From: Zygnema circumcarinatum SAG 698-1b
Taxonomy: Eukaryota > Plantae > Zygnematophyceae
Assembly (NCBI GenBank): GCA_037447605.1
Contig: CM074811.1
Span: 1,488,001 to 1,552,000, forward strand
Length of the DNA: 64,000 bases
Direction: 5' to 3'
Shown: positions 14,401 through 33,030 of the stretch, piece after piece
Layout: each line of letters opens with the position of its first letter
How positions within the stretch are numbered: the stretch's first letter is position 1
Notes under the pieces: generated by a model
What the model saw: only the letters and a program-made list of their open reading frames with translations
What the model was told of the DNA's origin: nothing
Database searches by the model: none
Translations under genes and position numbers: made by a program

Positions 14401-16604
14401 CAGCCATGCTCGATCATTTGATTGTTTACTTGTCGCCCTTCAAACCTTACGAAGGTGGATAGATAGCTCTCAACCTTGCATAGGGTACGTAAGGCGACGA
14501 GTTCAAGCGACCACGAGTTCCTACCAATGGATGCAGCGATACTTTTTTGGTGCTGCCCATCATGGATGGATTTTATGTGTTCAATAGCGCTACTGCCCAT
14601 CGTTTCTGACCAGAAATGTTTGGGATTGTCTTCTATAGGTCTGGAGAAAACTCGCAGTCTGGTATGGGTAGTGGTGAGCTTTCATCGTTGGGGGATGTCT
14701 TCAAGACTCGTTGGGCTGCTGCATCATCTCGGTAAGCTGTGACCTGTAAAAGCGCTTGTATTTTGCTGTATCTATAGTGGAACTGTCCAACAGAGTTAAA
14801 ATTCACACAGTAGAAAAGGCTCCTGGGGTCCTCATTATGGAAAGGCCAACTTGGGAAAGGGGTTATTCTCTGCTGACAACTTGTATGTATAGCTAGGCAA
14901 TCCAGTCAGGATTGTTTAAGTCCTTAACCGGCTCAAATGAACATTTCTTAAACTAAGGCCGGTGCTATCTAAGTCTATCAGAGGTTTGGGTCGTCATTAT
15001 TCCCAGTAACTGATGCTGTTAACTTGTACCAATTTCGATTTTTTCGCGCTGCACAGTGGATGACACCCAACTTGAGTGGTGATTTCCCTCTCTGCACTTA
15101 TTCTTAACGTGTCTTGTTGGCTTGACTCTCGCAGGTATCGAGAGACTCTAACTAAGGGGACACGTTCATTTAGAGACCGATTGCGGCTTCGCGGCGGTAG
15201 TGTTGCTGACATAAGCGCGAAAGCTCGAGAAGTGGGAGCTGGGGTTGTGCGAGCATTCGAAAGGATGTCGGACCCGGGTCCGAGCACGAGTGATAGGTGG
15301 GTCTTTCTTTGTTCTTGACAGCTGCTTAAAGCTGCTTGGGTTTATGTATTGCTCTGGGATTCACAAGGACATGTTAACTATATACAGTGCCGATGCTGCT
15401 GCTCTTGCTTCACTACCGACTGCTTGTTCTGTTAGTCTTAAGATTTAGATGGCGTAGTCCGTTTATTGACAATAAGACTATACATGCTTGCGAATGCGAA
15501 TATATGGTCAGGAGGAGTACGTTAGGATCAGCAAATGCTTGTTAGGTTTTGCCAACTAACTCATTTTGCTCGATCGCCCTGTTTTCGTCCGCGTAAGACC
15601 TCTTGCCATTTGGCATACTTGAAAACCATTGCACTTTCGATGATTTAACCCGGAGTTGTTGGAGGATACTTACTGTGTCCCATACTTATACCAGTGATTG
15701 CAGGTCTCACACGGAAAATCAAGCGGATGTCGTCCCTACTACAGGGGGGACGTCAACTTCAGCTTCAGCATCACCAGACAGAACAGAAACTTCAATTTGT
15801 AGCTCTGGAAGCCCTTCACCTGAACATGCAGTTTTTCAGATTGGTCGACAGAGTGGGCAAGAGCAGTCTTCTGGAGGAGTTTCTGCCCCTCTCTCGTCTG
15901 AAGGCTGCAGTCGTCGTCAGATTGCCCCACCTTCAGAGAGTGTTGAAAGGGGAGTGCAGGCCGGCAGTGTTTCTGCTTCCGGCCGATTTACCAGTGAGGA
16001 GCAGAATGACAAGGAGGAAGTTCTTTTCAAGGTATGTAAACCATATGTCACGAATAGGATTACTTTTCGAGAGGGTCCAATTCAAGCTCGTGGGTGAAGT
16101 GGCAGGAGTCTTGCTGTGGGCCGTTATTGGTGGCTTCGTTCAGAAGGTGGGAGAAGGGTGTGTGCTTGTTTGAACAGGGATATATGTAATTTAGAATGTG
16201 TTGCACGATCGCAGTTAGGTAGTATAGTTTTGCTTTGGAACACAGCCATTTATTTATTTATTGCTGTTTATGAAGTAGGAGCTTCGATTTAGACATGTAA
16301 ATATCTAGGGAAAGCATCCACCTTTGGAGCAGTCCATTCCAGAAGTTACAGTTTTCTTGGCTATTTCTAATTGCAGAGGTGTTGAAATGACTTGGCTAGA
16401 ACGAAGTCAAGTAAGGAAGTAAAGCTCTGCTACAAGGTAATGCGAATCTCTGTCAAGGTTAAGTCGTTGTGTCAGCATTAGTAGAGGAGAGGTGATTCGT
16501 ATTCTGCTACCTGATTGTTTGTATGTGGTGGGCTGCATGTGCAGACTGGATCGGATGCAAATTCTGTGACAGAACCGCATCAGACCTCTGCCCTCACAGC
16601 ATAG
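11479..16604 (+). CDS. RHF2A: RHF2A-like RING-H2 E3 ubiquitin ligase, 517 aa; exons 11479-11664, 11993-12039, 12656-12718, 12932-13040, 13289-13887, 15135-15296, 15704-16031, 16545-16604
   Basis: It has an N-terminal RING-H2 with WQPLSLKDPES, plus EEADLERRIMQHLAAAAAG and RYRETLTKGTRSFRDRL, which match the RHF1A/RHF2A family as I recall it. All exon phases are consistent. Confidence 0.85.
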
Positions 16605-18511
16605 ATCACAAAGATCAGCTTTTTGGATTGCTCCCAACAGTGACTTGGCTTTGATGATATTCCGTATTGGTTCACAAGCTGTTGTGAAGCTTGTGATCCG
16701 TGCGATCAAGGGAACTTTCGGAATGTTTCGGTTGTTGTTTCGAAACACGGCAGGGTTCAAAACTCGAAAACAATTACGACTGTCCTTTTGGGATCGGAAC
16801 TTCTTTGGAGAGGCACAAGGCAACAGAAGGGTTTGTGCAAAGCCAGAGCTGTAGTTCCGGTTATGTGTTATCGCTTCCTGCACAATGGTGCCTCCTTCAG
16901 TCAAAGCTTTTGATAGCTCCTTCCTTTCAGGCTGTAGGACGTAACCGTCGATTTGAAGGTGGATCCATTTTGTTGCTACTGCTGCTGGGCATGGAGACAC
17001 ACCAGCAGGTAGTTGGATCGGTGATGTTTTGAACTCTACCAGTAGACTACTCTGTATGATAAGTTGGGATTGGGGTGGTTCCCAGAAAGCTCATTTTAAA
17101 AAGATCCTGGCGCGCTAGGCTAGGCACGCTCCATGAACTGAATCTGCTGCCACTAGGAATGTTAGCAGTGTCGAGTATTATAGTGGGGGTGGGGATTTGG
17201 CAGAATGTTGTCTGGACAAACACAGACGGTGTGCTCTTTCTAAATAGAAGACTTCGCTGCCTCGGGTCTGTGAGTGTACCTGGTTTGAACATGCGCAGAC
17301 TGGCAGCCCCTGCGGACTGCGTACTGGCTTTCGTCATTTTGCCTTATGGGTCGCCGTTATGGGGATAGCATGCCCACCTGGTGTGGGCTGCTTGAGGGCA
17401 TGCATGCATGCATGCATGCATGCACAACAACAACAAAACCTTCTAACTAATGGTTGGTTGGTCCAGAACCCGAGTTGTCATCTCTGTCAGCATCAGCGCC
17501 GACTTCAGCTATCGCATTGCAACCATCCGATATTGCAATTCGGTCGACCATGGCCAACCATTGACGTGAGACACCTCGACTTTTCGCCAACCCTTGGCGA
17601 GCCAACGGTTGGCGTCGCCCAACGATCCGACCTGTGTTGCGCTGTCCCCGGCCGGTCCCCTGTACGGTCGTACGGCTCCGCTGCGAGGTCAAACTACCGC
17701 ACGTGTGGCCCCTCCTGCACTTGCGAGAGTGACGTTACGTGACGTGACCTGATGCGCCCGCCAGTGGCGCCGCACGATGACGCGCCCTCGCGCTGCCGTC
17801 GTGGCGGCCGCAATTCGTGGAGCCAATCAGAGGGTGCCGTGGGAAATGAAGCGGAAAAAAATTCAATGATTGCAATGGCGGAGCAGCAGCGGAGAGTTCC
17901 GTGCCCTCGTGCGCGCTCGAGGGTTCGAACCCGCGACGGGCCGCCCCCGCGCAACCGCAATCCAACCGTTGGCGCGGCCCGGACGTGGCGGCTCCTGGAC
18001 GCTCCCGCGCACGTGGCGGCACCTCCGCCGCCCGCCCTGCGCGCGCCGTGCTTGCGCTCCGTGCTGGCCCGAGGGAGGGCGGAAGAGAGGGAGAGAGAGG
18101 GAGAGAGAGGGAGAGGAAAGAAAGGAACGAGAAGTAAGGAGGAGGAGCGCTTTTGGTTCGGGCTGCAAGATTAGGGTTGAGTGGAAGGCAGGGCGCTCCG
18201 AGGCAGTCATAGGAGAGTTTTGCGCGGCAGGAAGGCATATCCTGTAGTTGTTTCGAAAGCTGAAAAAGAAACGAGTTTCGTGCATATTGTCGCAAGCTGA
18301 AGCTGCTGTTGTGCGCAAGAACCGTCCTGTTGCGGCTTGTTGCTTGAAGTTCCTAGTGTTGTTGCGCCATGCCTTGGAGGGACAGTCCCTCCGCAAACTT
18401 TCATCGGAATATCTGTCAAACAAACTTGCAAGTTCGGTGCTTGGATGCGGGAACGTTCTTCAACCTGCTCCTCCTCTAGCCGCCTCGTGAATGTCAGAGT
18501 AGAAGCCACCC

Positions 18512-21500
18512 ATGCCGGAACCTCCAAAGCAGGGGAGGCGGAGGCGGTTAAGATTCTTTCTTTGCTGCTTTCGGCCTCAGGTCAAAGATGACATCAAGGA
18601 GCAGCCAGAAGAGCCTCCGCCACCGCCTCCCCCGCCTCGCCCTCCTCCTCCGCCTCCTCCTCCGCGACCACCCGGCCCTCCTCCCCCACCCAAGGGAGGA
18701 GGGCCGCCGCCACCCCCCGTGAAGAAGTTAAATGTGCGGCATTTGCAGTGGAAGGGCCTTAAGGACGCCGATCAAGACAGCCTATGGGCTCGGGACGCCT
18801 TGTATGCTCGTTTCCTTCTGCTATGTTTTTTTATTAAGAGAGTATGACAGGAAGTGTATCAATCTTTTTTGACTGAGGTCATGGCAAATCATTTTGTTCC
18901 GATGTTACTGCCGTTGGGACTTCGTTTGTCTCTGGAACAGGAAGGGGAATAGAGGAGACCATGTGTGCTGCGTAAGGGGTAGAATTATTCACATTGTGTA
19001 CAATTTTAGGCATTAGTGGTGCATCATGTCTTCCGCCACTCTAAATATTACAGGACTCTGATGGTTGAAGCGAAAGTTGTAGGGGGGCAGTGAAGGATAC
19101 ATAGCACGTGATCCCTTCCTAACGACAACGAGGCAGCGTTGTTTGTTTATGCCTCCTTTATGCCTGTTTATTGCTTGCCTTTGACACAATTTCGTTCACA
19201 ATACGGATTTAGAGACTATCGCCTATCCATGTTCTCTCACAGGGCAGGTCGTCGCCTATCTAGTTATCTAGTGCCAGCGTGAGTGAAGAGACTTGACTGT
19301 TCAAGAAAGGGTTTCGTTCGTTGTCCTCAGTGTTTTAGCTGTATTCATGCTATTGTGGCTTGAAGAGTCTCAAACACTCTATCGACGACCAAATTTGCCT
19401 TTTATTAGAAAAAGTTAATATGTGAAGTATGGAAGAGCGGTTATTGAAGCTGAGCCGTAGAAGGGAAACCTCACCTGACGGCTTGATTATGTGCTTGTCT
19501 GAGGAGCCAGGGATCTTGACCTGGATGAGGAGGAATTGCTTGACGTTTTCGGGACTAAAGTAGCTCCTAAGCCAGTTCAAACAAAGACTGCAAAACCTAA
19601 AAAGACGGTGGTCCGCTTGGTAAGCCGTGCAAAGCTTTAATCGTCAGTTCGTAATGGTTGTTCCTTTCTTTAGTGTTCTTACTTGGAAAAATGCTACTTG
19701 TTTGGCTTGCGAAGCCTGCAGCCGGGGTAGAATTGTTTGTGGTTGTTTACTTGTTAGTAATGGCAATCTTTCAAACTATTGTTAAGGCAGAACGAGGCAG
19801 CTGTTTCTCTTTCCGCAACAAGCTGTTATTACAAAAAGCCACCTTCACATGCCCTTTGTGCACCACACTACTGCATTAGTTGGCCAGAACCTTGTTTTGG
19901 CCTACTATACTGAATTGCTGGCCCTGTCAGACTTGTGAATGCTTTAAGCTATTCATTCGCATGACTTTTGTAGCTCGTTATGTGTACGCCGACCTGACAG
20001 AAAATATGTGGAACCTCAGCACTCTTTGAGTTGGGCTTGAAGGACAGTAAAATCCCGAATTTAGTACAGGAACACATCATTGGGCTGTCGAAAGTTGCTG
20101 TCTTGCCAGAAGTTTTTACTGCCTGACACAATTCGTCGTTAAATGCAGCTCGAGTCGAAGAAGGCGCAAAATTTGGAAATTGCGACGAAGTCATTAAAAC
20201 TAGAGCCTGCAGAGCTGGTGGTATGTTGCACAGGCGTCAACTCTAACCATCTAATCAGCGTTTATCGGATGAGAACTCAATTGGAGCTGAAGGCTTTCGC
20301 TAGAGATTTTGGCACTGTATGGACAAATGTAGACACAGTATTCTGCTTGTAGCTCTGTTAAGAAGAATGCACAAATGTAGATTTCAAAGAAATGCTGGGT
20401 TTTTTTGTCGTTTATTGTGTTTCCAGCTGATAGCATGGATCCATCAAATCGTTGTTGTACTTTACTTAAGTTCCTACAGGTTGTGTAGCTTGTTACTGGG
20501 GCAGAAGAGTATGCTTCTACGGGAGGCATGCTGGTCTCATGCCAATGAAAGCTTGGGCAGGTTGCTATCTTGAGAGTCGACACAACGATTCTGGGAGAGT
20601 TGTCGGAGAGTCTGGTTGATGCGCTTCTGAAATACAGCCCTTCAAAAGACGAGGCTGCAAAACTGAAGGTGTGTCATTTACTGAGACTTTGACTTATATT
20701 AAGTTCTTCAAACGGGGCAAGGCATTGTGCATCACCGCGTTGGGTTGGGCTTGTCGTCTATGAAACCATGTGGATATACTGCCGAGGTGGAGGAATCCCT
20801 CATGAAATTGATCTCAGAAATGTCTTCCGAAATCCATTATGGCAACAGTTAACTATAGCGTATTGGCTTTGGCTTAAGTTCAAGACAATTCGACTGTAAC
20901 TCACTCAGGATAACTATTGCTTAGCTCAGAATCTAGCTCGTCTTTGCAAGTTTTCCTACTTTTGATCCTGCAAGACTTGGTTGGAGCCTACAATCTGCAG
21001 ACTTCCCCGTTGATGCCTTCGGCGTTCATACAATGCACCTTAAATGCTGATGCCGCTGTATGAGCAGGATTAGCTGTCGACATGTATGACATTTAAATTG
21101 ATGTTTTTTTCTTGAGAAAGAACCTGTACTTAAGAGCTTACACCTCTCGCCGAGTTGGGAGCAGGAGTACAAAGGTCCTTTTGAAGAGCTTGGGCCTGCC
21201 GAGCAGGTGAGGTCATTTCGTTGCTTTTTCATATACACACTATGTAAGCACTCTTGGCAGTCGCACGCTACACGAACAAAGCGAGTCTCAGTCATTCTTT
21301 GAAGCAATTGCCTTGTAGCAACTGCTTTCGGTAAACTTGTGTAGAATACTTTGTTCCAGAACAGTCAGTACTTGGCAGAATCGAAAAGAGACTCATCAGT
21401 CACCTACAGCCTGGGTTTCTAATTCCTTGCTGAGAACTCCTCCTTTACCGGTTCTCCAGTCGTATACTTTGCCTGCATGATAACTTGTCTTTGCGTTTGT

Positions 21501-24500
21501 CTCTATCAGCAAAGGTAAATCAGAGTATTTGTGTGTACGTGGTGCTTTAGACGGTCGAGGTCTTACGAACTCAGTGTCTTTGTCTTAGCAGAATTCACAT
21601 ACTTTATTGTTGTGTTTGCAGCTATGGCTTTCCTTAATTCCTGTGGTGCGGCTTGAGAAGAAGCTCCGTGTGCTTCGTTTCCGAAGTTTCTTGGCTGAAC
21701 GGGTGAGGACGTTTCTCGTATTGCAATTGTGTTTCGCCGAGGTTATGAGCTCTCTTCTGCAGATACTTCGGTATCGAATTAACTTTGAATAATGCGCAAA
21801 TATCTTCAGCTAGAGCAGTTTCTTGTAATGATGGTTGTCACCTACGTGGTAATGGGGCATGCGTCACTACGGGCCGGTGCAGTTTCGCCGTTGAATTGCG
21901 GATTAATGATGATGATGTTGCTTCTAATATTTGTGCTTTTGGATTGCTTTTGATTGGCGACAGGCTCGTCCTGTAGAGGACAAGATCAAGTTCGTGATTT
22001 CCATGTCTCAAAAGGTATGTGGCTACATCACTGCAGTGATCGTTTCCAGACGTGAGCATGCTTTCAGAGCCTCTTTAGAATTGTAAAATCACCAAGTCTC
22101 AATCGAGTATAGTTGTCCTAACTTGTCGAAATGGGCCATATTCTCGGTCACAAGTACGCGTCACATCCTTTCTGGTGATTTTTTTGCATATTATTTAGCC
22201 TTCACCACTCCATACTAGACACGATTTAAAGCATATTTGATGGAAGCCCTCAAGCACTTTTGTGGCGGTTCAGTCATACCTGCAAGCCTTCAAATAGCTT
22301 GCTAACTGAAAGGATTCCTAGCTGAAAATGCTTTTAAGCATGCAATTTGTGGCGTATTTCATCGTCGGCTATATAAATTCTGCCTGCATGAGCATATAGA
22401 CCTTCTTGCTTCATGCATACGATAGATTTGCAAGCTTAGTCTGGTCTCTCTTGCGTTGATCTTCCTCAGTTGTGTCAGCCTGATGGGCTTATTGCGAGAG
22501 ACTACTGTGAGTGAGAATCTCTTCTCAACTAGCATGCTCATCTGCTTGGAAGTTATCTGATCAGCCCCCTCGCTTCTTTGCAGGTGCAAGGCTCCCAGAA
22601 GTTGCCGGCAGTTCTTCGCGTGGTTCTTGCTATCGGCAACAAGCTGAATCAGGGAACAAACAGAGGTTTGCCTCCAAGCAACCGGTAGTGTGTTTCAGGC
22701 TTGCCTGCGTACAATGGGGAGGGGGGAAAGGAAGGGGGAGGGAGGTGTTGTAAGGGGGGCTGGGGGGGAGGGTGGAGAGAGAGGATAAGGACGAATGGCT
22801 GAGACTGTTACATGAGTTACACGAGTATCATGTGTTACATGATACTGAGTTGCATGCCGAGTTTTCCATAGCTGGCCCTTTGTCGTCCAAAAGTTGCCCT
22901 CTAAGTATGTCTGCTTATGCAGCAGATTAGAGCCAGACCAAAGGCAGGGAATTCGTTTTAAATGCAGTTCTGCCCCTAATTTGTGAGCCGGTTTTGACAT
23001 ACTGCATCTCGTTCAGTACTAGGACCTCTGTCCGTCTGCATGTAGTTTTTTCTTTTTGGGATTTGTTCCTTTCCGTCGTTTTTCTGACAATTTTCAATGG
23101 ATGGTTCGTCGTGACCCATTTTTTACTTTGGGATTGATGGTTCATGGGATAACAGCGAAGGCAAAAGGTATCACCCCAGAAGACCTCATCATTGCCGGCC
23201 GCACTAAAGGCTTCATGCAGTACCTTTGTAAGGTGCGTACGACAGATGCTGGAGAGCCTTATCATTTCTTCTTTAGAAGCTCACAAGGGGAAGTCGACAG
23301 GCTGTAGAAGCCATAAAGGTCTTACTTCTGTTCTTCTATGCATGTTTTCCACAATTGCGTGGAAGTGTTCAACTGATGTGGACTGCTTCTGATCCATTGT
23401 ATGCTATCATTCTCCGTCATGAATTGAAACAAGCTTCTGAAATGCAAAACAGCACTGCTAGGCTTTCGGCCTTAGGCCGCTGAAGGTGCCATTGATCACA
23501 AGATGCTGACGTCATTATGTGTCATGTCATGCATGTTTCTGCTCTGATGGGTCGCATCGCAACAGGTTGTGGCGGAGCGGCGGTCGGAACTGCTCGATTT
23601 TTGGGAAGAGTTTGTGGACGAGGGGAGAAATCTGCTGGCGGACACATTGAAGGTGGGCTTTCCCCTTGATGGTAGAATTCACCATATCGTTTGTTTGGGT
23701 TCGAGTGTGTGTGGTCTTGACTCGGATTAGAAAGCACGTCCGTTCAAAGCTGTTGTTTGAACTTGTGACCCTATTGAAGGACAGACGAAGGTTAGTGTCA
23801 AGAAATAGAGGGAATTACTTTTTGCAGAGCATCTGCACGATGGTTTCCACCTTCGCTTAGGCAATATCTAGGAGATTTTTTTGTGGTGGATTGTCGTTGT
23901 GCCTTAGTGAGGTTTTTGGATGGTTGTAGACAGTGCAGGGATGATTTTGCAAGCCTGCCTTTTTTTTTTCAGCGTGTGCAATATTGCTGCCATCTCGTGG
24001 GCAGGTTGACAGAGATGGCCTTGAATCGCAAGTGAAGGAATTGGAGAAGGGTATGGTGGAGGTAGTGGAGGAGTTAGGGAAGCTGAAGGAGGAAAAGGAG
24101 GCAGATGATGTTGAATTTGCTTCTAGAGAGAGAGAAAAGATGACTTGTGAGGATGAGAATGGAAAGCGACGTAGACAGGAAGAGGATTTGAGGAAGGCTG
24201 CTGAGACTGAAAAGATGCTGGTAGAGGATATGCGGGTGAAGAAGGAGAGGGCAGAAGAGCAGGCGAGGCAAGGTAAGGAGAGAGCAGCGATGGAATGGGA
24301 AGATAATGAAGGTCGGAAGAGGTTGGAAGGGGATTGGCTCAAAAGGAGGAAAGAAACAGCGTTCATGTTCTTAGAAGATCGGGAAGTCGAAAGGGAGAGG
24401 GTGTCTCTGCTTTTTCTGGAAAAAGTGGAAAAGAGGAGGCAGGAACATGAGGAGATGTTGAGGAGATTGGAGGAGGCTGCTAGGGAAGAGGCGGAACGGC

Positions 24501-27500
24501 TGGAAAGAGAGAGATTGGAAAGGGAGAGGATGGAGCAAGAAGAGAAGGAAAGGAAGGAGGAGGAGGAAAGGGTGAGGAGAGTGAGGCTGGAAGAGGAGGA
24601 AAGGGAGAGGAAGGAGAAGGAAGAAAGGGACAGACGTGAAAAGGAGGAGAAAGAAAGGCAAGAGAGGGAGGAGGAGGAGAGACTTGAAAAGGAGAGAGAG
24701 GAAGCGAAGAGGTTGGAGGAGGAGTTGAGGGAGAAGGAAGAAAGGGATAGGTTAGAACGAGAGGAAGAAGAAAGGAAGCAACTGGAAGAAAAAGAGAGAT
24801 TAGACAGAGAAGAAAGAGATGGAGCTTTGGCACTCCTTCAGCAAAAGTTGAAAAGTGGAGAAATTAAGGTTATGCAAGATAGGGACAGCAGCCAAGATAC
24901 AAAAGGCAAAGCCAAACTTGTTGATATTAGCTTAGAAAAGGAGACAATGATAGACATGGATTTTAGCCCGGAGATGGAGGAATGGGGGGAAACTAACTAT
25001 GAATTGGCCCGAACCGGCAATAAAAACCAGAATATAGTGGCTCAGAGCTTGGCCGTTTGGCTGAATGGTCAATACAAGGAAGTGGACGACGAATCTGTCC
25101 CTCCCCATGAGGGACAGTTTGAGACCAAAAAATGTGACGTGATTTCGGACGGGTTACAGGATGTGAGCGGGGAAGTTCGAATGCAGCCTATGAACGGTTT
25201 GGAGCTCTCGTTTTCAAGCTTTATTGAGCAGAATGGAGATCATAAAAAGGACTCGGCTGTAGAATTGGCCGGAAAAGGGGAACAGCATGTCGAGGCACTT
25301 GAAAGAAGTTCAGGGGATTTGAATGGGCATAGTCAGCGGGAGGCAAAAGTCGAAGGAGAGAGTATTAGGGGCGAAAGCACAGCGACTTTTCTGGAAGGTA
25401 TGAAGGTTGAAGAGGTTAGCTCCGGTGTACCAGAAAATAATGGAACCGAACGTGGACAAGGTTCTGCTCAGATTCCTGATGGTGGAGTGCAAATGCAAGC
25501 TGTGACAGGGAATGGTGGGGGTCAGCACAGAGAGGAGGCCGTGACCAGTAATGGAGGTAGTGCAGAAGGTATAGAGAAAGCAAAAGAAGAAGTGGTAGAG
25601 GAAGAGGAGACTGTGGAGCAGAGGAATGCAAGGCAGGAAAGAGAGTGGCAAGAAGAGGCAGAGCGGGAGAGGAAAGAGGCAGAAGAGAGGCATGAACGGG
25701 AGAATGCTAACAGAGAACAGCGTGCCAAGGAGAGGCAGGAACGCATGGAGAAGGCAAGGAAAGAGGCTGAGGAACGTGCAAAGCAAGAGAAGTTAGAGCA
25801 AGAGCTGAGCATTGTAAGGGAATGGAAGCGCCATAGAGCAGACGTGGATTCTCGGGCCGAGACATTTTGGGTGAGTCTGTCGATTGCTTTTTACCAGAAA
25901 ACGGTATTATTCTTTGCACCTTTTCCATTCACGAGGTCTGTCTGATTTCGGCCCCGGCTGACTTTACCACACTTTATCGCATTCACGGTAAAGTTTGCCT
26001 TTGAAAGCTGATTGTGCTCTGTATGGGTGCATGCTCCTTTTATCTTTTTGTGAATGCAGGCGGTGGAAGCGTTTTATCTGCAGGAAGTTGAACCGACAGT
26101 GAATCATCTCCGGCAAGTCATGGGTCATTTGGTGAGATGTTCTCAGAGTGCTCTGTTTCTAACGTCGCATGCGTTACAACGTGACATTGTCTAGGACAGG
26201 TCAACATCTGGTAGAGAGGGGAGGCTTTGATGCTATCAAATTTTCTTGCCATTCATTTGAGAAAAAGGGGAGAGTCAGCGGCTCTCGAAAGTTTAGCTTT
26301 TAAATTTCAAAGAGGTTTGGCCTCCGTTTGCTCTTCTGGGCAGGGTGAAACTTCAAATGCGCTGGCAAAGTACTTTGGAGTGGACCCGAAGACTCCTTGT
26401 ACTGAAAGTGAGCACTTTCCTTTCCTATGAACTTCAGATTGGAATAGTTCGGGCTGGACCAGTGCGTCTGACTGCAAGTGAAGTTCGTTCTCTAGTCCAA
26501 TTGTTATACGTGAGGCGGCTCACACAATAAAACTGCTGGGGATACAATAGCATTTCAAAGCACATTTAGAGGGAGGCGATCCTTATCAGACTTGACACGC
26601 ATGTGAAGAAGTTGGATGGTTGGAGCTGGTGCATTGCGAGATTGCAAGTGATGAAAAAGCAAAGTGTTATTTGATTCTCGTGTTAACGAGTGTGTGTCTG
26701 TGTTTTTCCTGATTGAGCAGTTTTCAATGTCCTATACGACTTCATTGAACTGTTTAAGAAGGCTAAAATTGAGAACGAGAATCGAAAGAAGGCAGAAGCG
26801 GAGAAGACACGGAAGCAGGCGGAATTGGAGGCTCGGAGAAAGCGGGCAGAGGAGAATAAAAAGAAGCTTCAAGAGCAGGAGCTGAGACGGAAGAGGTCAG
26901 TGGACATTGGAAGAGAGAGTATGCTTAAGGATAACGCGGAGAGAAGAGACATGTCTCCGTCTCCTATCAGTATACCCAGTAGGAGCCCTTCACCGTCCAT
27001 CTTCTCCCCCATCACGACGCCCGGAGGTGATACACCCTCCACACACTCCACCTATTCACCTTTCGCTTCTTTGTCCCCCATTGGCTCTCCTATGCTCCGA
27101 AGCCCATCTCAGACACCCCCTCATACATCTCCCAGGGGTTCGGTAGCAATGTCGGCATCCTATCCATGGTCAATTGATGCTCTCGGAAGTGTTCCCTCAG
27201 CTCCGTCCTCTTCGGGATCTGTAGCCTCTCCTGCAGGAACCCCTTCTCCAAACTCCCTTCTTTTGTCCAGTCCTGCCTTAGACAAATTCAGGAAGCGGGC
27301 TATGTCGAAGGAATCGGACTCATCGGACGACGACTTTGATGAGGAGAGGCCCAGAAAGGCTCGTCTCCATGTGGGGCTTCGCGTGAACGGCAGCGTGCAA
27401 ACTATAACACCCCCTCATTTGGACCACTCTTTGAGTGCCCCTGGGCGGGTGGAAGAGTTCAAGAAGGCACGAGTCAGACATGCTCTGAACGGCAAGGCTA

Positions 27501-27931
27501 ACGGCATCTTGCATTCACAGCTCGCTGGAAAGGGAGAGGGTTACAGTCTTCTCCGTGCAGTGGTTATGCAAGAGACCAGGACGATTAGAGCGGAGGACTC
27601 TCCACAGGGGCCGTCACAGACGTCACTGTTAGTTGCCTATTGCCTTTGTATATACTGGCTGGTAAGCCCTACTTTCTTCAAACGAGCAAGAAAACGACTG
27701 GCGTCCAGGAAAGTCCTGGAATTTGGTCAACAGCTGTCCTTGTCTGAGAGGCCCTCTGCTGCTTATGATACGGCTTCAAGCAGCAGCTCTTTACCGGTTT
27801 CTTCCCACTCCCCTTCTGCGCCTTTCCTCCCCATCCAGCCTTCAGTGTCTCGGAAATCAAGACTTTCGAGGAGCGTCAGCTACGCAGAGGATTTGGAAGA
27901 GGAGGGCGACATGAGTGATGCTGCCAGCTAG
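18512..27931 (+). CDS. Formin (FH1-FH2), 1403 aa, 14 exons: 18512-18801, 19511-19619, 20149-20220, 20561-20668, 21165-21206, 21622-21702, 21964-22014, 22584-22665, 23156-23232, 23566-23652, 24005-25870, 26060-26131, 26344-26407, 26721-27931
   Basis: A polyproline FH1 is followed by FH2 motifs LQWK...SLW, KKAQNLEI, PSKDEAAKLKEYKG...LGPAEQ, VLAIGNKLNQGT, MQYLCK, YFGVDP and LYDFIELFKKAKIEN. All junctions are GT-AG and in phase. Confidence 0.9.
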
Positions 27932-28509
27932 GCCTCAAGAGATGAGAAGAAGAGAAGAAAGAAGGGAAGAGAAGAAGGGAAGAAGATGAAGAGATGAGTG
28001 GTTTGTTCTCTGCAGGAGAGCGGTTGGAGGTGGGTGGGAGGGAGGGAGGAGCGGGAATTAGTTTAGTGTTCAGCTATAACCAAGCTGTAGAATTGATGAT
28101 GTATTTTTGTTGCTTAAGTATCCTGTTTATTATTGAGGCAACTTCCATTATTAATAAGATTCTTGACGGCTTATTCGTCTTCTGGAGCACCGCTTGTAAG
28201 ACGTCTGGAATAGATCTTGGGAGGAAGGGCTCCTCTGGTCCTTGTCTCAAAAGAACGAGTGAAAATTTGTTAGAGCGAGAGAAGAGAAGGACTTTGGATC
28301 ATTGTATGGGCAGCACTCCATGAATAGCGCAGCGAGGATGAGGTTCAATGCGGCCCTTTTTCACTGTCAACATTTCATCATGTTTTCTCATGTCTTTTTT
28401 CCCCTTTTTTTGTTCGTCGAACTTTCCGAGTGGTTTTTTACAGAAGCTCTATGTTTCCCTCCCCACCCCCACTCTCCCCCGCCTCGCCCTCGTCGGCTTC
28501 TTTACAGTA

Positions 28510-28641: not shown

Positions 28642-29749
28642 TTAGTAGCAGGGTGCCTTCCTGTGTAGGCCCACTTTCCTGCTATAATTCGCCCATACCC
28701 CGAATGAACAGGTGCCAAATATGTCAAACCAAGGTCGTTACTCTCTCTCTCTCTGCTTCCCACAACCTTCTTTCAAGAACGATAGAAAGTCACGGTGAGT
28801 GGTGGGAGGCGCCGGTCTGTAGCTGCGCAATTTCTGCCTCACTCCTTCCTCCTTTTCTCTGCATGCTCCATTTCTCCTCGTGCATGTGCGTGCATGGCAG
28901 CCACGCCTGCCGGCGGCAAAGCGCCGAGTGCAGGGACTGATGGCGGCCGTCTTCCCTTCCCGCACGTCATTTTCCCCAAAGGCCGCGCAGTGCACATTGC
29001 GATAGGCTGTCACATCATCAAGAGAAAAAAAAAAATCACGATGGGGCCATGCATTCTATAGTGAGGAACGGTTTTGGTTATTTTTAGGCCCAGCGCGAAA
29101 GGGCCACAGGCCAATCGTACGGTCGAAAATCTTCATCTCCTTGGTAATCGAAGCTAAAGTTAAGCATAAAGGATTTCGATAAAGTACGATCTTCGATAAA
29201 GTCAAAAACATGTTCCATGTCATGTCCATTAGTCTGCCACGTGGCGTTCTTGCGAGTCTCCAATATTTCCACGTAGTTCTAAAGTTCTTTTCTTTCGGAC
29301 TCGAATTCCCAATTTCCAAATTTAATGTCGGTGCTAGTCCACGTGGCGACACACTATTGGTGGTTTTGTCCACATGGCGGCCTCTTATTGCGCCCGTGCT
29401 TACAGAAAAAAAACGCTCGGCTGCTACCTGTGATTTGTCGTTTTGCGGAATCGTACAGGGAAGTATCTCCATGACATCAGCCACTAAAAGTCGAAACGTC
29501 ACTCGTTGCCACGTGTCGCCTACTCGTCACGTCATCGCAAGCCTAATCAGATCGACGGTCGACCGCGTTCTACGTCGATTTTGTTTTTTGTCGGTGTGCT
29601 GCCCGCGGGCAGGAAGGGATCCGGCGGTTTACCGGCGTCGGTGTGGATCAGGACAAAACATTTCTGACGGGCAGAAGAAAAAATTATTTAATGGGCCGAC
29701 AGAGCGCTCCTGCCCTGCGCTGCGCTCTCCTGAAGGAAAGCGAAGCGCC

Positions 29750-30232
29750 CTTGGGAGGGAGGGGGGAAGGGAGAGGGGAGGGAGAGGGAGAGGAAGGGAG
29801 AGGGGAGGGAGAGGGAGAGGAAGGGAGGGANNNNNNNNNNGGGAGGGGGAGGGAGGGAGGGGGGAGGGAGAGGGGAGGGAGAGAGAGGGAGAGAGGGAGG
29901 GAGGGCGGGAGCGGAGGGGGAGGGAGAGGGAGGGAGGGAAGGCGGGAGGGGTGGAGGGGGAGGGAGAGGGGGAGGGAGGGAGAGAGGGGAGGTAGAGAGG
30001 GCTGGAAATTGGGGAAGGGAGAGGGATAAGGGGACGGAGGGAGAGAGGGAGGGAGAGGGGGACGGAGGGAGAGGGAGGGAGGGCGGGAGAGCAGGAAAAG
30101 GGGAGGGAGAGGGGGACGGAGGGATATTGGGAGGGGGGGGCGGGAGAGCGGGGAAGGGGGAGGGAGAGGGGGAGGGAAAGAGGGAGGGAGTGCGGGAGGG
30201 GGGGGAGGGGGAAAGGGGCGGGGGAGAGGAAA
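29750..30232. repeat. Polypurine (GGGAGA-like) tract containing a 10-N assembly gap at 29831-29840
   Basis: Directly visible. Confidence 0.95.
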
Positions 30233-30295
30233 ATTTCGCAATGCAGGAATGCAGGAATGCGTGCTGAAAGGGGAGGCGGAGGCAGCCCGGACGCC

Positions 30296-33030
30296 ATGGC
30301 TCCAAGCTCGCGGTTTGCGGTTGTGTTTGACAATGCTTCTTTCTCGGACAGAGTGCTGAGTTGGAGGACTTGCCTTTCGGAAGCAGAGGGGGAAGGAGGT
30401 AAGGCTTTGCTTCTGCGGAAACCCTTTTGTGCTGAAAAAAAACAAGAGGAAATGCTCTTGCAGCTGCTGCGTGTTTTTCTTAATTTTAACTCGGTAAGAT
30501 ATTGGGTTTGACATCGAACAAGCTTTTAAGTGATAAACACAGCGGAAGGAAGTGCTGCATCACTTGATTTGGTCTACATGGGCCGTGGAAAAGTGTGGAA
30601 TTAGTGCTCTCTTTGTGGTTTCCTTGCATACAGATTATGGAATTGAAGCTTCCAGACTCATTTTGGGTGGCCATGGCGGTCCCATACATGTCAGCCGAGC
30701 CGTGCTGGCTGCTGCCTCTCCCTACTTTGAAAAGCTCTTTTCGTGCGGCATGAAGGAGTCCTGCTCCGATGATGGGGAGATCACCCTCGTAGTCTCTCCC
30801 GAAGGTTAGTCGAATTTTGTTATTTGAATTTCCTTTTTGTCGGAAGCGGCTAGGTTGATCACTCACTGGCCATTCCGAAAGATTGGAATATTGGAGGCTA
30901 GGCGGAGGAGAGAGGACTAGCAAATACTAGTAAGAAGAGTAAAAGGGTGAAAATGGATGGAGGGAGAGGAGAGGGAGAGGGGAGAGGAGAGGGGAGGGAG
31001 GGAGAGGGGAGAGGGAGAGGGAGAGGGAGAGGGGAGAGGGGAGAGGGGAGAGGGGAGGGGAGAGGGGAGAGAGGGGAGAGGGGAGAGGGAGAGGGAGAGG
31101 GGAGAGGGGAGAGGGGAGAGGGGAGAGGGGAGAGGGGAGAGGGGAGAGAGGGGAGAGGGAGAGGGGAGAGGGGAGAGGAGGAGGAGAGGGGAGGAGAGGG
31201 GAGAGGGGAGAGGGGAGAGGGGAGAGGGAGAGGGAGAGGGGAGGAGGGGAGAGGGAGAGGGGAGAGGGAGAGGGGAGAGGGGAGAGGGAGGAGGGGAGAG
31301 GGAGAGGGAGAGGGAGAGGGGAGAGGGGAGAGGGGAGAGGGGAGAGGGGAGAGGGAGAGGGAGGGAGAGGGAGAGGGAGAGGGAGAGGGAGAGGGGAGAG
31401 GAGAGGAGGAGGGAGAGGAGAGGGAGGAGGGGAGAGGGGAGAGGGAGAGGGAGAGGGGAGAGGGAGAGGGAGAGGGGAGAGGGGAGAGGGGAGAGGGAGA
31501 GGGGAGAGGGGAGAGGGAGAGGGAGGAGGGGAGAGGGGAGGAGGGGAGAGGGGAGGAGGGGAGAGGGAGAGGGAGAGGGAAGCGGTCAAGAGGGGAAGCG
31601 GTCAAGAGGGGAAGCGGTCAAGAGGGGAAGCGGTCAAGAGGGGAAGCGGTCAAGAGGGGAAGCGGTCAAGAGGGGAAGCGGTCAAGAGGGGAAGCGTTCA
31701 AGAGGGGAAGCGATCAAGAGGGGAAGCGGTCAAGAGGGGAAGCGGTCAAGAGGGAGAATGGAGGGAGAGGGGATTTTTTTCGAGAGAGGCGAGGGGCGGG
31801 AGCATGACATGCATGTCGACAGGATGACTTACTTGCAACTGTGCATTATATCGATGCAGCTTGAGTTATGAATTCCGGAAGGTCGAGCTGTGCCGACTGC
31901 TCGAAATTAATCGATGTTTGCTTGATTGGGGGGCTTTCACAGAGGGTGAGCAGATGAGAACGTTTTTATTCTTTTGCTATACAGAAACGTTGCCGTCCAG
32001 GCTGAGTCAGGACGCGCTTTTAAGTCTGTTGTCTTTGGGCAACAGATTTGAGGTGCCTCTGTGTGTACACTGCAGCTGCTCCAAACTGTTACCGTTGAGG
32101 CTGGACATAGCGCAGAGCTTGGCTCTCTTGAATATGGGAGAGTCGCTCTGTCATCACGAGTGTTTCAACGACTTGCTTGATTCAGACTGCATGGCGGCTG
32201 ACCTTTGGGACTTTGAAAGCTTTAGTAAGTCACGAGCTTTTTTGGACCTAAATTCGAGTGGAGTGGCACAATACCTTCAAAGAAAAGCGATTGTTGTTGA
32301 ATCGGAGCAGGATGTATTCAAGGCAGTGGTGACCTGGGCCGATCGTAAATGTGTCGACGCACTGCATCGACAAGAGCTGCTGAGGAAACTGCTCCCGTTT
32401 GTGCACTTTCCTGCAATGGACGGCGAATTTTTGCAGTCTAGTGTTGCCGTTTTGCCAGAAATGAGGACTTTGGAGGGAATGACTTTGCTGGTAGAAGCAC
32501 TCGCTTACAAGAGCAGCAACTTACAGAGGCAGAGGGAGATAGCCTCAGGAGGTGTACGAGATGCAGCCTGGTATAGGGAAAGGATTAGCAGGAAACCATC
32601 TGCACAAGTGGTCAGTTTGCCTGATGACATTGATGCGACGGCGTACGGTTTACCTGGACACTATTACATGATGGTGAGGTTCAGAAAAGCTCAATTGGAG
32701 GCTTTGGGACAAGAGGGGAAAGTTACCTCGAAGTGGTGCAGCATCTGCGGAGTGGAGTTCAGTCTTGAGGTTTGGCGGCAGAAGTCATTCTTTCACTGGA
32801 GTTTGAAGGGGAGGTATCTTCAAGGGAAAGACTCGTTGAAAACTGTGAAGGCTTCTCTGGCTGCAAGGAATCTGATGTCAGCTCAACAGTTGATGACATT
32901 TGAAAACAAAGCAGAGAATGAGATGAACTTTCCTGACTTCTTCCTCGGCAGTGTAGAAGATATACTCCGGTCAACCCGAATGTTCAACAGTGGTGTGCTG
33001 CTAGTGATTGCCAACTTAGAAATCAGGTAG
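30296..33030 (+). CDS. BTB/POZ-BACK protein, divergent LRB/POB1-like CUL3 adaptor, 453 aa; exons 30296-30398, 30634-30804, 31943-33030
   Basis: BTB: [11 protein letters not shown] and [30 protein letters not shown]: [15 protein letters not shown]...[10 protein letters not shown]. Phases are consistent. Confidence 0.85.
30955..31575. repeat. (GGGGAGA/GGGAGA)n polypurine satellite in BTB intron 2
   Basis: About 620 bp containing only G and A. Confidence 0.97.
31575..31752. repeat. 16-bp minisatellite (AGGGGAAGCGGTCAAG) x about 11
   Basis: Directly visible. The 16-aa period in the ORF track equals three units. Confidence 0.95.

Follow-up and report, generated by a model that had tools for sequence, protein, structure and literature searches.

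The formin homology 2 (FH2) domain is regarded as a compact, universally conserved ring whose known natural variation is small, and for the history of the plant formin classes, the algal relatives of land plants are a poorly sampled group. In each FH2 subunit, a three-helix bundle connects a knob to a post (PMC6056239, PMC2948019). Long insertions in individual formin sequences are mentioned without detail in a phylogenetic study (PMC5628938), and no description of a large FH2 insert, or of a single alpha-helix (SAH) within FH2, was found in the open-access literature searched. The nearest FH2 relatives found for the gene described here are the plant class II formins, such as moss For2A and Arabidopsis FH13 and FH14, which carry a PTEN-like domain, FH1 and FH2. 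This gene occupies the + strand at ~18.5-28.3 kb of a 64,000-nucleotide window of Zygnema circumcarinatum SAG 698-1b (the whole stretch analysed; contig CM074811.1, positions 1,488,001 to 1,552,000), and it encodes a formin, one of the proteins that assemble actin filaments. The FH2 domain of this formin is interrupted by a very large charged insert carried by one exon, 24005-25870.

This exon is an open, stop-free frame (1866 nt, 622 codons, phase 0 at both ends) whose translation runs from VDRDGLESQVKELEKGMVEVVEEL to AETFW. The three exons lying 3' of it encode AVEAFYLQEV, YFGVDP and LYDFIELFKKAKIEN, which locates the three downstream peptides of the original prediction, an earlier reading of the same DNA. 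Words sampled from 23900-27950 are present at 81-89% in five sequencing runs from two studies, and the contigs of four of the five runs (two studies) were compared with 22400-28350, exon bounds being given after cut correction. These transcript contigs define six introns in that interval, all six bordered by GT..AG; the runs themselves are not recorded as RNA, and it is because the joints are canonical that the contigs are taken to come from spliced transcripts. Contig X1 (record 1), of 5035 nt, connects all seven exons from 22584-22665 through 26721 onward and holds a further 1175 nt upstream. In every run, 24003-25869 is covered by a contig with no gap, no difference and no internal joint, and no splice joint inside 24005-25870 was found in the contigs of the four runs. 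Loose contig ends at 24662 and 25666 correspond to other contigs with common purine-rich low complexity, not to splice joints.

The large insert is constitutive in all contigs seen, and the formin is one gene, not two, since both halves lie on a single mRNA contig. The earlier claim of an insert encoded in one exon agrees with an exon found whole in the contigs of four runs from two studies; removal of most of 24100-25800 by splicing was examined in the transcript contigs and not found, and neither was a division of the two halves between separate genes, as one mRNA contig spans both. It is very improbable that the exon is an artefact, whether through intron retention, chimeric assembly or the presence of a piece of a separate gene flanked by two formin fragments. 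Such an origin could appeal to runs not recorded as RNA, to the loss of rare variants from contigs and to neighbouring introns kept in some low-depth contigs, but six canonical joints are present, the same structure emerges from four independent assemblies belonging to two studies, the 622 codons of the exon contain no stop and keep the reading frame across both of its boundaries, and a transcript contig of another species encodes the same continuous protein. The anatomy and expression of the insert-bearing formin are near certain. Two minor irregularities were recorded in the contigs: introns 23653-24004 and 26408-26720 are kept in low-depth contigs, which suggests pre-mRNA or intron retention, and one-base indels occur at 23959 and 26553, each in single contigs.

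When the translation of the exon was scored against 1.84 billion representative proteins, only one real relative was obtained, P0001 (1352 amino acids, E-value 3e-122), whose residues 277-890 align with exon residues 1-622. This ortholog is encoded by a transcript contig of 5181 nt, from another run and another species, and is the sole member of its cluster. It is colinear with the window exons (41-89% identity in the FH2 parts by tblastn), the short exon 26060-26131 giving no separate tblastn alignment, and it stood proxy for the joined window protein in the Pfam scan and in folding. Sixteen weaker matches of the exon search (E-value >1e-7) were rejected as relatives, all of them being confined to the charged or central part. 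Pfam was run on ten of these and detects no domain in three and unrelated domains in seven (response regulator, DEP, SNase, sulfatase-modifying enzyme and others); what the weak matches have in common looks like a composition rich in Glu, Arg and Lys (E/R/K), and nothing more. Proteins of 342-1088 residues gave no match in a word search based on the exon, and the whole ortholog retrieved only generic FH2 clusters from the ESM Atlas. The gene is a narrow-lineage formin. Its coding features, with the basis of each assignment, are given below.

18512-18801, + strand: exon 1 (3' end approximate), with the ATG start codon at 18512, the N-terminus of ~30 residues, FH1 and the start of the FH2 lasso (LQWKGL...SLWA); ortholog comparison.
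19512-22014, + strand: six FH2 exons encoding lasso, linker, knob and first bundle helix; P0001 tblastn (colinear, 41-79% identity) and plant FH2 profile (colinear exon-wise matches to positions 56-193), the 3' end at 22014 being set by the loose end of an RNA contig.
19512-19634, 20149-20230, 20567-20668, 21168-21209, 21619-21702 and 21961-22014, + strand: approximate coding pieces of these six exons.
Near 20170, + strand: knob Ile in AQNLEI; alignment.
22584-22665, + strand: FH2 exon with GNKLNQGTNR; RNA joint, Pfam FH2 at 27.1 bits alone, plant FH2 profile 204-235.
23156-23232, + strand: FH2 post exon AKAKGITPEDLIIAGRTKGFMQYLCK, divergent and lacking six residues present in relatives; RNA joints and alignments.
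23566-23652, + strand: FH2 exon VVAERRSELLDFWEEF...TLK, start of the second bundle helix; RNA joints, 81% identity to P0001.
24005-25870, + strand: large exon of 1866 nt and 622 codons; unbroken in the contigs of four runs, P0001 277-890.
24005-24088, + strand: exon residues 1-28, end of the second FH2 bundle helix VDRDGLESQVKELEKGMVEVVEELGKL; 79% identity to the ortholog.
24089-24820, + strand: charged arm 1, exon residues 29-272; composition, heptads and AlphaFold2.
24425-24820, + strand: E/R/K core of arm 1, exon residues 141-272; composition.
24821-25579, + strand: central acidic/polar region, exon residues 273-525, predicted disordered; alignment and model confidence.
24968-25075, + strand: conserved island EWGExNYELAR...AQSLAVWLxGQY; pairwise alignment.
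25580-25819, + strand: E/R/K arm 2, exon residues 526-605; composition, conservation and AlphaFold2.
25820-25870, + strand: exon residues 606-622 EWKRHRADVDSRAETFW, lead-in to the third FH2 bundle helix; alignment and models.
26060-26131, + strand: FH2 exon AVEAFYLQEVEPTVNHLRQVMGHL, third bundle helix; RNA joints, the class II C-terminal alignment beginning at the equivalent P0001 residue 891.
26344-26407, + strand: FH2 exon GETSNALAKYFGVDPKTPCTE; RNA joints, 71% identity to P0001, whose counterpart matches FMNL3 4eah 343-387.
26721-27931, + strand: last coding exon, with the final FH2 helix FNVLYDFIELFKKAKIENENRKK and a Ser/Pro-rich tail of ~370 residues; RNA, 51% identity to P0001.
27623-27679, + strand: conserved hydrophobic 19-mer in the tail; hydropathy.
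27929-27931, + strand: stop codon.
27932-28330, + strand: 3' untranslated region, to the end of contig X1; X1 record 1.

FH2 homology is found on both sides of the insert. Pfam FH2 (PF02181) matches residues 13-311 of P0001 (model 7-310 of 372, 149.9 bits against a cut-off of 34.8, E-value 1.4e-43), the alignment ending at the residue that corresponds to exon residue 35. Most single window exons are too short for Pfam, two giving weak FH2 matches of which the best, at 27.1 bits, is below the cut-off. The solved FH2 domains of mDia1, DAAM1, FMNL3 and INF2 align over P0001 residues 7-306. The short part after the insert is not reported in the Pfam scan of P0001; it aligns as P0001 918-961 with FMNL3 4eah 343-387 (E-value 0.003) and as P0001 891-965 with the FH2 ends of class II formins (33% identity, E-value 5e-7 in a small database). 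Against plant class II proteins, the N-terminal part ends at residue 299 of P0001 and the C-terminal part restarts at 891, and as only ~17 residues separate these parts in class II formins, the net insert amounts to 575-587 residues. The plant FH2 profile is colinear with the window exons over 56-235 before the large exon and over 413-468 at 26720-26899, and has no match inside 24005-25870. FH2 homology stops ~28-35 residues into this exon and restarts at the next one. The C-terminal FH2 part (third bundle helix, YFGE loop and last helix) is present after the insert.

The position of the insert was read along the chain order lasso, linker, knob, first bundle helix, post (GNxxN...), second and third bundle helices and last helix. 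The second helix (ELLDFWEEF...VDRDGLESQVKELEKGM) precedes the insert and the third (TFWAVEAF...) follows it, and the chain topology would place the turn between them at the knob end of the bundle. The original prediction had set the insert at the turn of the FH2 coiled coil, which is where it is found, between the second and third bundle helices; it had also recognised the interruption itself, its estimate of ~560 residues being slightly low against the 575-587 counted relative to class II.

Within the exon, the fraction of Glu, Arg and Lys reaches 0.68-0.88 across residues 141-260, where opposite charges are densely paired from i to i+4. Salt-bridge density peaks at 0.46-0.63. Residues 273-525 are acidic/polar and not repetitive, and the insert as a whole is net acidic. 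Of the heptad a/d positions, a fraction of 0.1-0.3 is hydrophobic in the E/R/K parts, of 0.1-0.4 over arm 1 and of 0.7 in the flanking FH2 helix. Heptad pattern and AlphaFold2 models both favour single alpha-helices over coiled coil for the charged arms. The long charged helix and the acidic part of the earlier description are both recovered, but the uniform helix followed by a linker gives way to a tripartite insert.

Folding of P0001 1-965 by AlphaFold2 predicts a helix at 253-303 (the second bundle helix) and then, after a break of low confidence at 304-335, a 221-residue helix at 336-556 with a predicted local distance difference test score (pLDDT) of 80-90. Disorder is predicted at 557-804, with a short helix at 615-626, and is followed by a 107-residue helix (805-911) that runs unbroken into the third FH2 helix, and then by the last FH2 helices. 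The window exon, folded with the ortholog as its alignment, is modelled as a helix at 3-283, short helices at 324-355, disorder at 356-536 and a helix at 537-621; the last of these has a pLDDT of 91-95, and the central region mostly 31-39, with 46-58 at its start and around helices 324-355. MAFFT alignments A1 and A2 were rejected for folding, as they pulled the C-terminal FH2 of relatives into the insert or into the N-terminal part; alignment A3, restricted to N-terminal rows, was used, and with it the C-terminal helices are predicted without alignment depth. No structure of the PDB was matched by the exon model in a Foldseek comparison, which is what a helix combined with disorder would lead one to expect. 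At 0.15 nm per residue, and if straight, the arms would measure roughly 33-40 nm and 11 nm. With its two ends anchored next to each other, the insert must close as a loop through its disordered middle, which excludes a free lever.

The insert exon is of nearly the same length in both species (622 residues in the window, 614 in P0001) and 49-51% identical between them. By segment, identity is 75% over residues 1-40, 65% around ALALLQQKLKSGEIK, 62% around the island EWGExNYELAR...AQSLAVWLxGQY and 22-35% over residues 361-520, and a further conserved island of the central region reads MNGxELSFS. Arm 2 is the best-conserved charged part of the insert (60-75% identity; 66% overall and 75% over residues 561-600). 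Since synonymous divergence (dS) is saturated, the proportions of differing nonsynonymous (pN) and synonymous (pS) sites were used in place of the substitution-rate ratio dN/dS. With pS at 0.70-0.99, a saturated level, and pN at 0.16-0.50 (0.16 in arm 2), the insert has been held under constraint throughout a long divergence.

An unlikely alternative sees in the insert a tolerated, low-complexity and purine-rich expansion with little function, accommodated by a permissive surface turn of FH2 and persisting because it is harmless. This turn does vary in length (~17 residues in class II, ~39 in FMNL3), tandem repeats of DNA are detectable in the E/R/K core, although weak and degenerate, central residues 361-525 are only 22-35% identical (pN 0.50), and similar E/R/K tracts occur in unrelated proteins. 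Such an expansion accords poorly, however, with a length kept at 622 against 614 residues despite saturated synonymous sites, with an arm 2 that is 66-75% identical at a pN of 0.16, with the retention of non-repetitive islands, and with DNA repeats that are old and degenerate and not the product of recent slippage. A recent microsatellite origin of the insert was considered and ruled out, the repeats being weak and degenerate.

The FH2 core around the insert retains several residues known to be required for activity or dimerisation. The two lasso Trp residues, which are needed for dimerisation, are kept as W22 and W34 of P0001 in invariant columns of alignment A1, and in the window as LQWKGL...SLWA. 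The knob Ile, whose role is known from Bni1p Ile1431 and mDia1 Ile845 (PMC2948019), belongs to AQNLEI, which aligns with AQNLSI of mDia1; its retention had been correctly anticipated from the motif NLEI. The GNxLNQGT motif is also kept, as GNKLNQGTNR, the class II form being GNALNQGTARG. In the post segment that follows, both species read AKAK(G/A)ITP(E/D)DLIIAGRTKG where relatives have SAVGFRLDSLLKLSDTRSRNNKMT, six residues more, so that the alteration and shortening first noticed here are real. At the position of the post Lys (Bni1p Lys1601), MAFFT aligns a Lys (AGRTK) with DTR/DVK of the relatives, and HMMER puts a gap there. Actin assembly is likely, though not assured, to be retained.

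Upstream of FH2, the protein opens with a peptide of ~30 residues, MPEPPKQGRRRRLRFFLCCFRP, which comprises a basic patch and a Cys-Cys pair and is directly followed by FH1, a polyproline tract with 33 Pro in 70 residues. In both species, this N-terminal peptide begins with MP(E/D)PPK and abuts FH1; in the ortholog transcript, an in-frame stop precedes it. The Cys-Cys patch of the window lies at 18512-18592 (MPEPPKQGRRRRLRFFLCCFRPQVKDD), its ortholog counterpart being MPDPPKRRWRRRFLCCLRPQVKDD. Pfam finds no PTEN-like PF10409 match in P0001 and no domain in the open reading frames of the window upstream of the gene, at 14467-18244. The basic/Cys-Cys patch could replace PTEN or transmembrane modules and is a candidate lipid anchor.

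This bare N-terminus has a bearing on another reading, in which the insert regulates or gates FH2 from beside the knob, by blocking or tuning actin binding or by an autoinhibition that replaces DID/DAD or PTEN, or in which the formin has become a non-nucleating scaffold or capper. The known regulatory N-terminal domains are indeed lacking according to Pfam (P0001 and upstream reading frames), the insertion point would stand at the knob end of the bundle according to chain topology, the post segment is divergent and shortened, and the insert is net acidic. Nevertheless, the activity and dimerisation residues that were checked are kept (lasso Trp, knob Ile and, in MAFFT, a basic residue at the DTK position), and long stiff helices of the E/R/K type are usual in spacers and not in plugs. 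A gate or scaffold is improbable.

The reading that we prefer, with a probability of about 0.5, is that the formin is functional and that its FH2 bundle bears a conserved, semi-rigid loop, which projects and serves as a spacer or tether for the central motifs. The spacer or lever arm proposed in the original prediction is consistent with the SAH-like character and the conservation of both charged arms. In this scheme, the FH2 core would most likely still dimerise and cap barbed ends, and each subunit would hold out a semi-rigid, closed-loop arm. Arm 2 would extend the third FH2 helix outward by ~11 nm, and the arm would expose the conserved motifs of the central region to a partner located tens of nanometres away from the filament end. 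The inclusion of the exon and the site, composition, conservation and predicted helices of the insert are established here; we infer that the arms would behave as SAHs in solution, that the core would assemble actin, and that the insert would project outward and act as a tether.

Several points weigh against this spacer or tether role. The two models disagree on the continuity between arm 1 and the second FH2 helix, with a break in P0001 and none in the window exon, their predicted template modelling scores are low (0.23-0.30), and AlphaFold2 is prone to drawing long helices for E/R/K-rich sequence. The central region, which the arms would present, has no Pfam match and its island no ESM Atlas match, hence no recognisable domain and no motif already known. 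In the post segment, GF is changed to GI/AI, a Pro is introduced into a helix, six residues are deleted, and pLDDT is below 50 in the ortholog model. Finally, contigs can conceal minor isoforms that lack part of exon 24005-25870.

A bolder extension of the tether, quite unlikely at present, would make the insert a mechanical element, in which two E/R/K constant-force-spring helices and a disordered loop on each FH2 subunit couple the barbed-end-tracking ring, by way of the conserved central motifs, to a membrane, an organelle or another partner, load transmitted into the bundle beside the knob tuning its gating. If true, this would be a naturally force-coupled formin with no known counterpart. 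More generally, a very large cargo can be accommodated in the turn that connects the second and third bundle helices; this bears on the load and bulk that FH2 tolerates at the barbed end and designates the turn as a possible site for engineered probes. The gene also offers a rare case of SAH-like segments nested inside a folded domain and not between domains, and to the formins of the algal relatives of land plants it adds an architecture devoid of PTEN, transmembrane N-terminus or GBD.

The C-terminal tail and the downstream DNA show further features. The hydrophobic 19-mer SLLVAYCLCIYWLVSPTFF of the tail, at 27623-27679, is followed by KRARKR, has a Kyte-Doolittle mean of 1.74 (2.09 in the ortholog) and is possibly a membrane segment. 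In the part of the tail encoded at 26900-27250, Ser/Pro-rich islands are kept in the ortholog (SPSPSIFSPITTPG.DTPSTHST.SPFASLSPIGSP), and further along come an acidic SDSSDDDFDEERPRKAR and a terminal SRKSRLSRSVSY. These islands and the acidic and terminal motifs look like phospho-regulated motifs. Beyond the gene, a purine-rich tract at 29700-30500 holds low-complexity open reading frames in several frames, Gly/Arg/Glu-rich on the + strand and Pro/Ser/Leu-rich on the - strand. A 10-N assembly gap stands inside it at 29831-29840, and GC skew rises up to 0.64 over 30001-32000.

On its best matches and motifs, the FH2 domain of this formin is closest to that of plant class II. The six best matches after the ortholog carry PF10409 together with PF02181, and class II proteins are 28-30% identical to P0001 over the N-terminal 300 residues and 27-33% over the C-terminal ~50-75. 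Both share the motifs GNxLNQGTxRG, YLCK and ELLDF and have FH1 directly upstream. The insert-bearing formin differs from class II by the absence of a PTEN-like domain, its N-terminus being of ~30 residues, by the 575-587 extra residues where class II has ~17, by the six-residue deletion and substitutions of its post, and by its long Ser/Pro-rich tail with a hydrophobic stretch.

Among solved FH2 domains (mDia1 1v9d/9b3d, DAAM1 2z6e, FMNL3 4eah and INF2 9az4), similarity over knob, bundle and post gives E-values of 7e-16 to 1e-8. The turn at the insert site is short in all of these, FMNL3 having ~39 residues between aligned parts as against ~624 in P0001. Small regulated inserts are known in metazoan FH2 domains, among them a neuronal microexon of DAAM1 whose extra residues in the FH2 region alter its properties while the fold is kept (PMC12056172). 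That microexon belongs to the FH2 linker region and is alternatively spliced, whereas the insert described here, of ~585 residues, stands in the turn between the second and third helices and is constitutive.

The arms themselves resemble the SAH domains of myosin VI, myosin X, INCENP, drebrin and the KER region of CAF-1 in their high E/R/K content, their i-to-i+4 pairs and the lack of a heptad seam, and both are predicted as long isolated helices. SAH domains are described in the literature as spacers and constant-force springs (PMC4183817, PMC5378345, PMC4571873). The likeness of the predicted arms to these domains is one of composition, without sequence homology. Whereas known SAH domains join two separate domains in series, the arms of this algal formin are nested in one folded domain.

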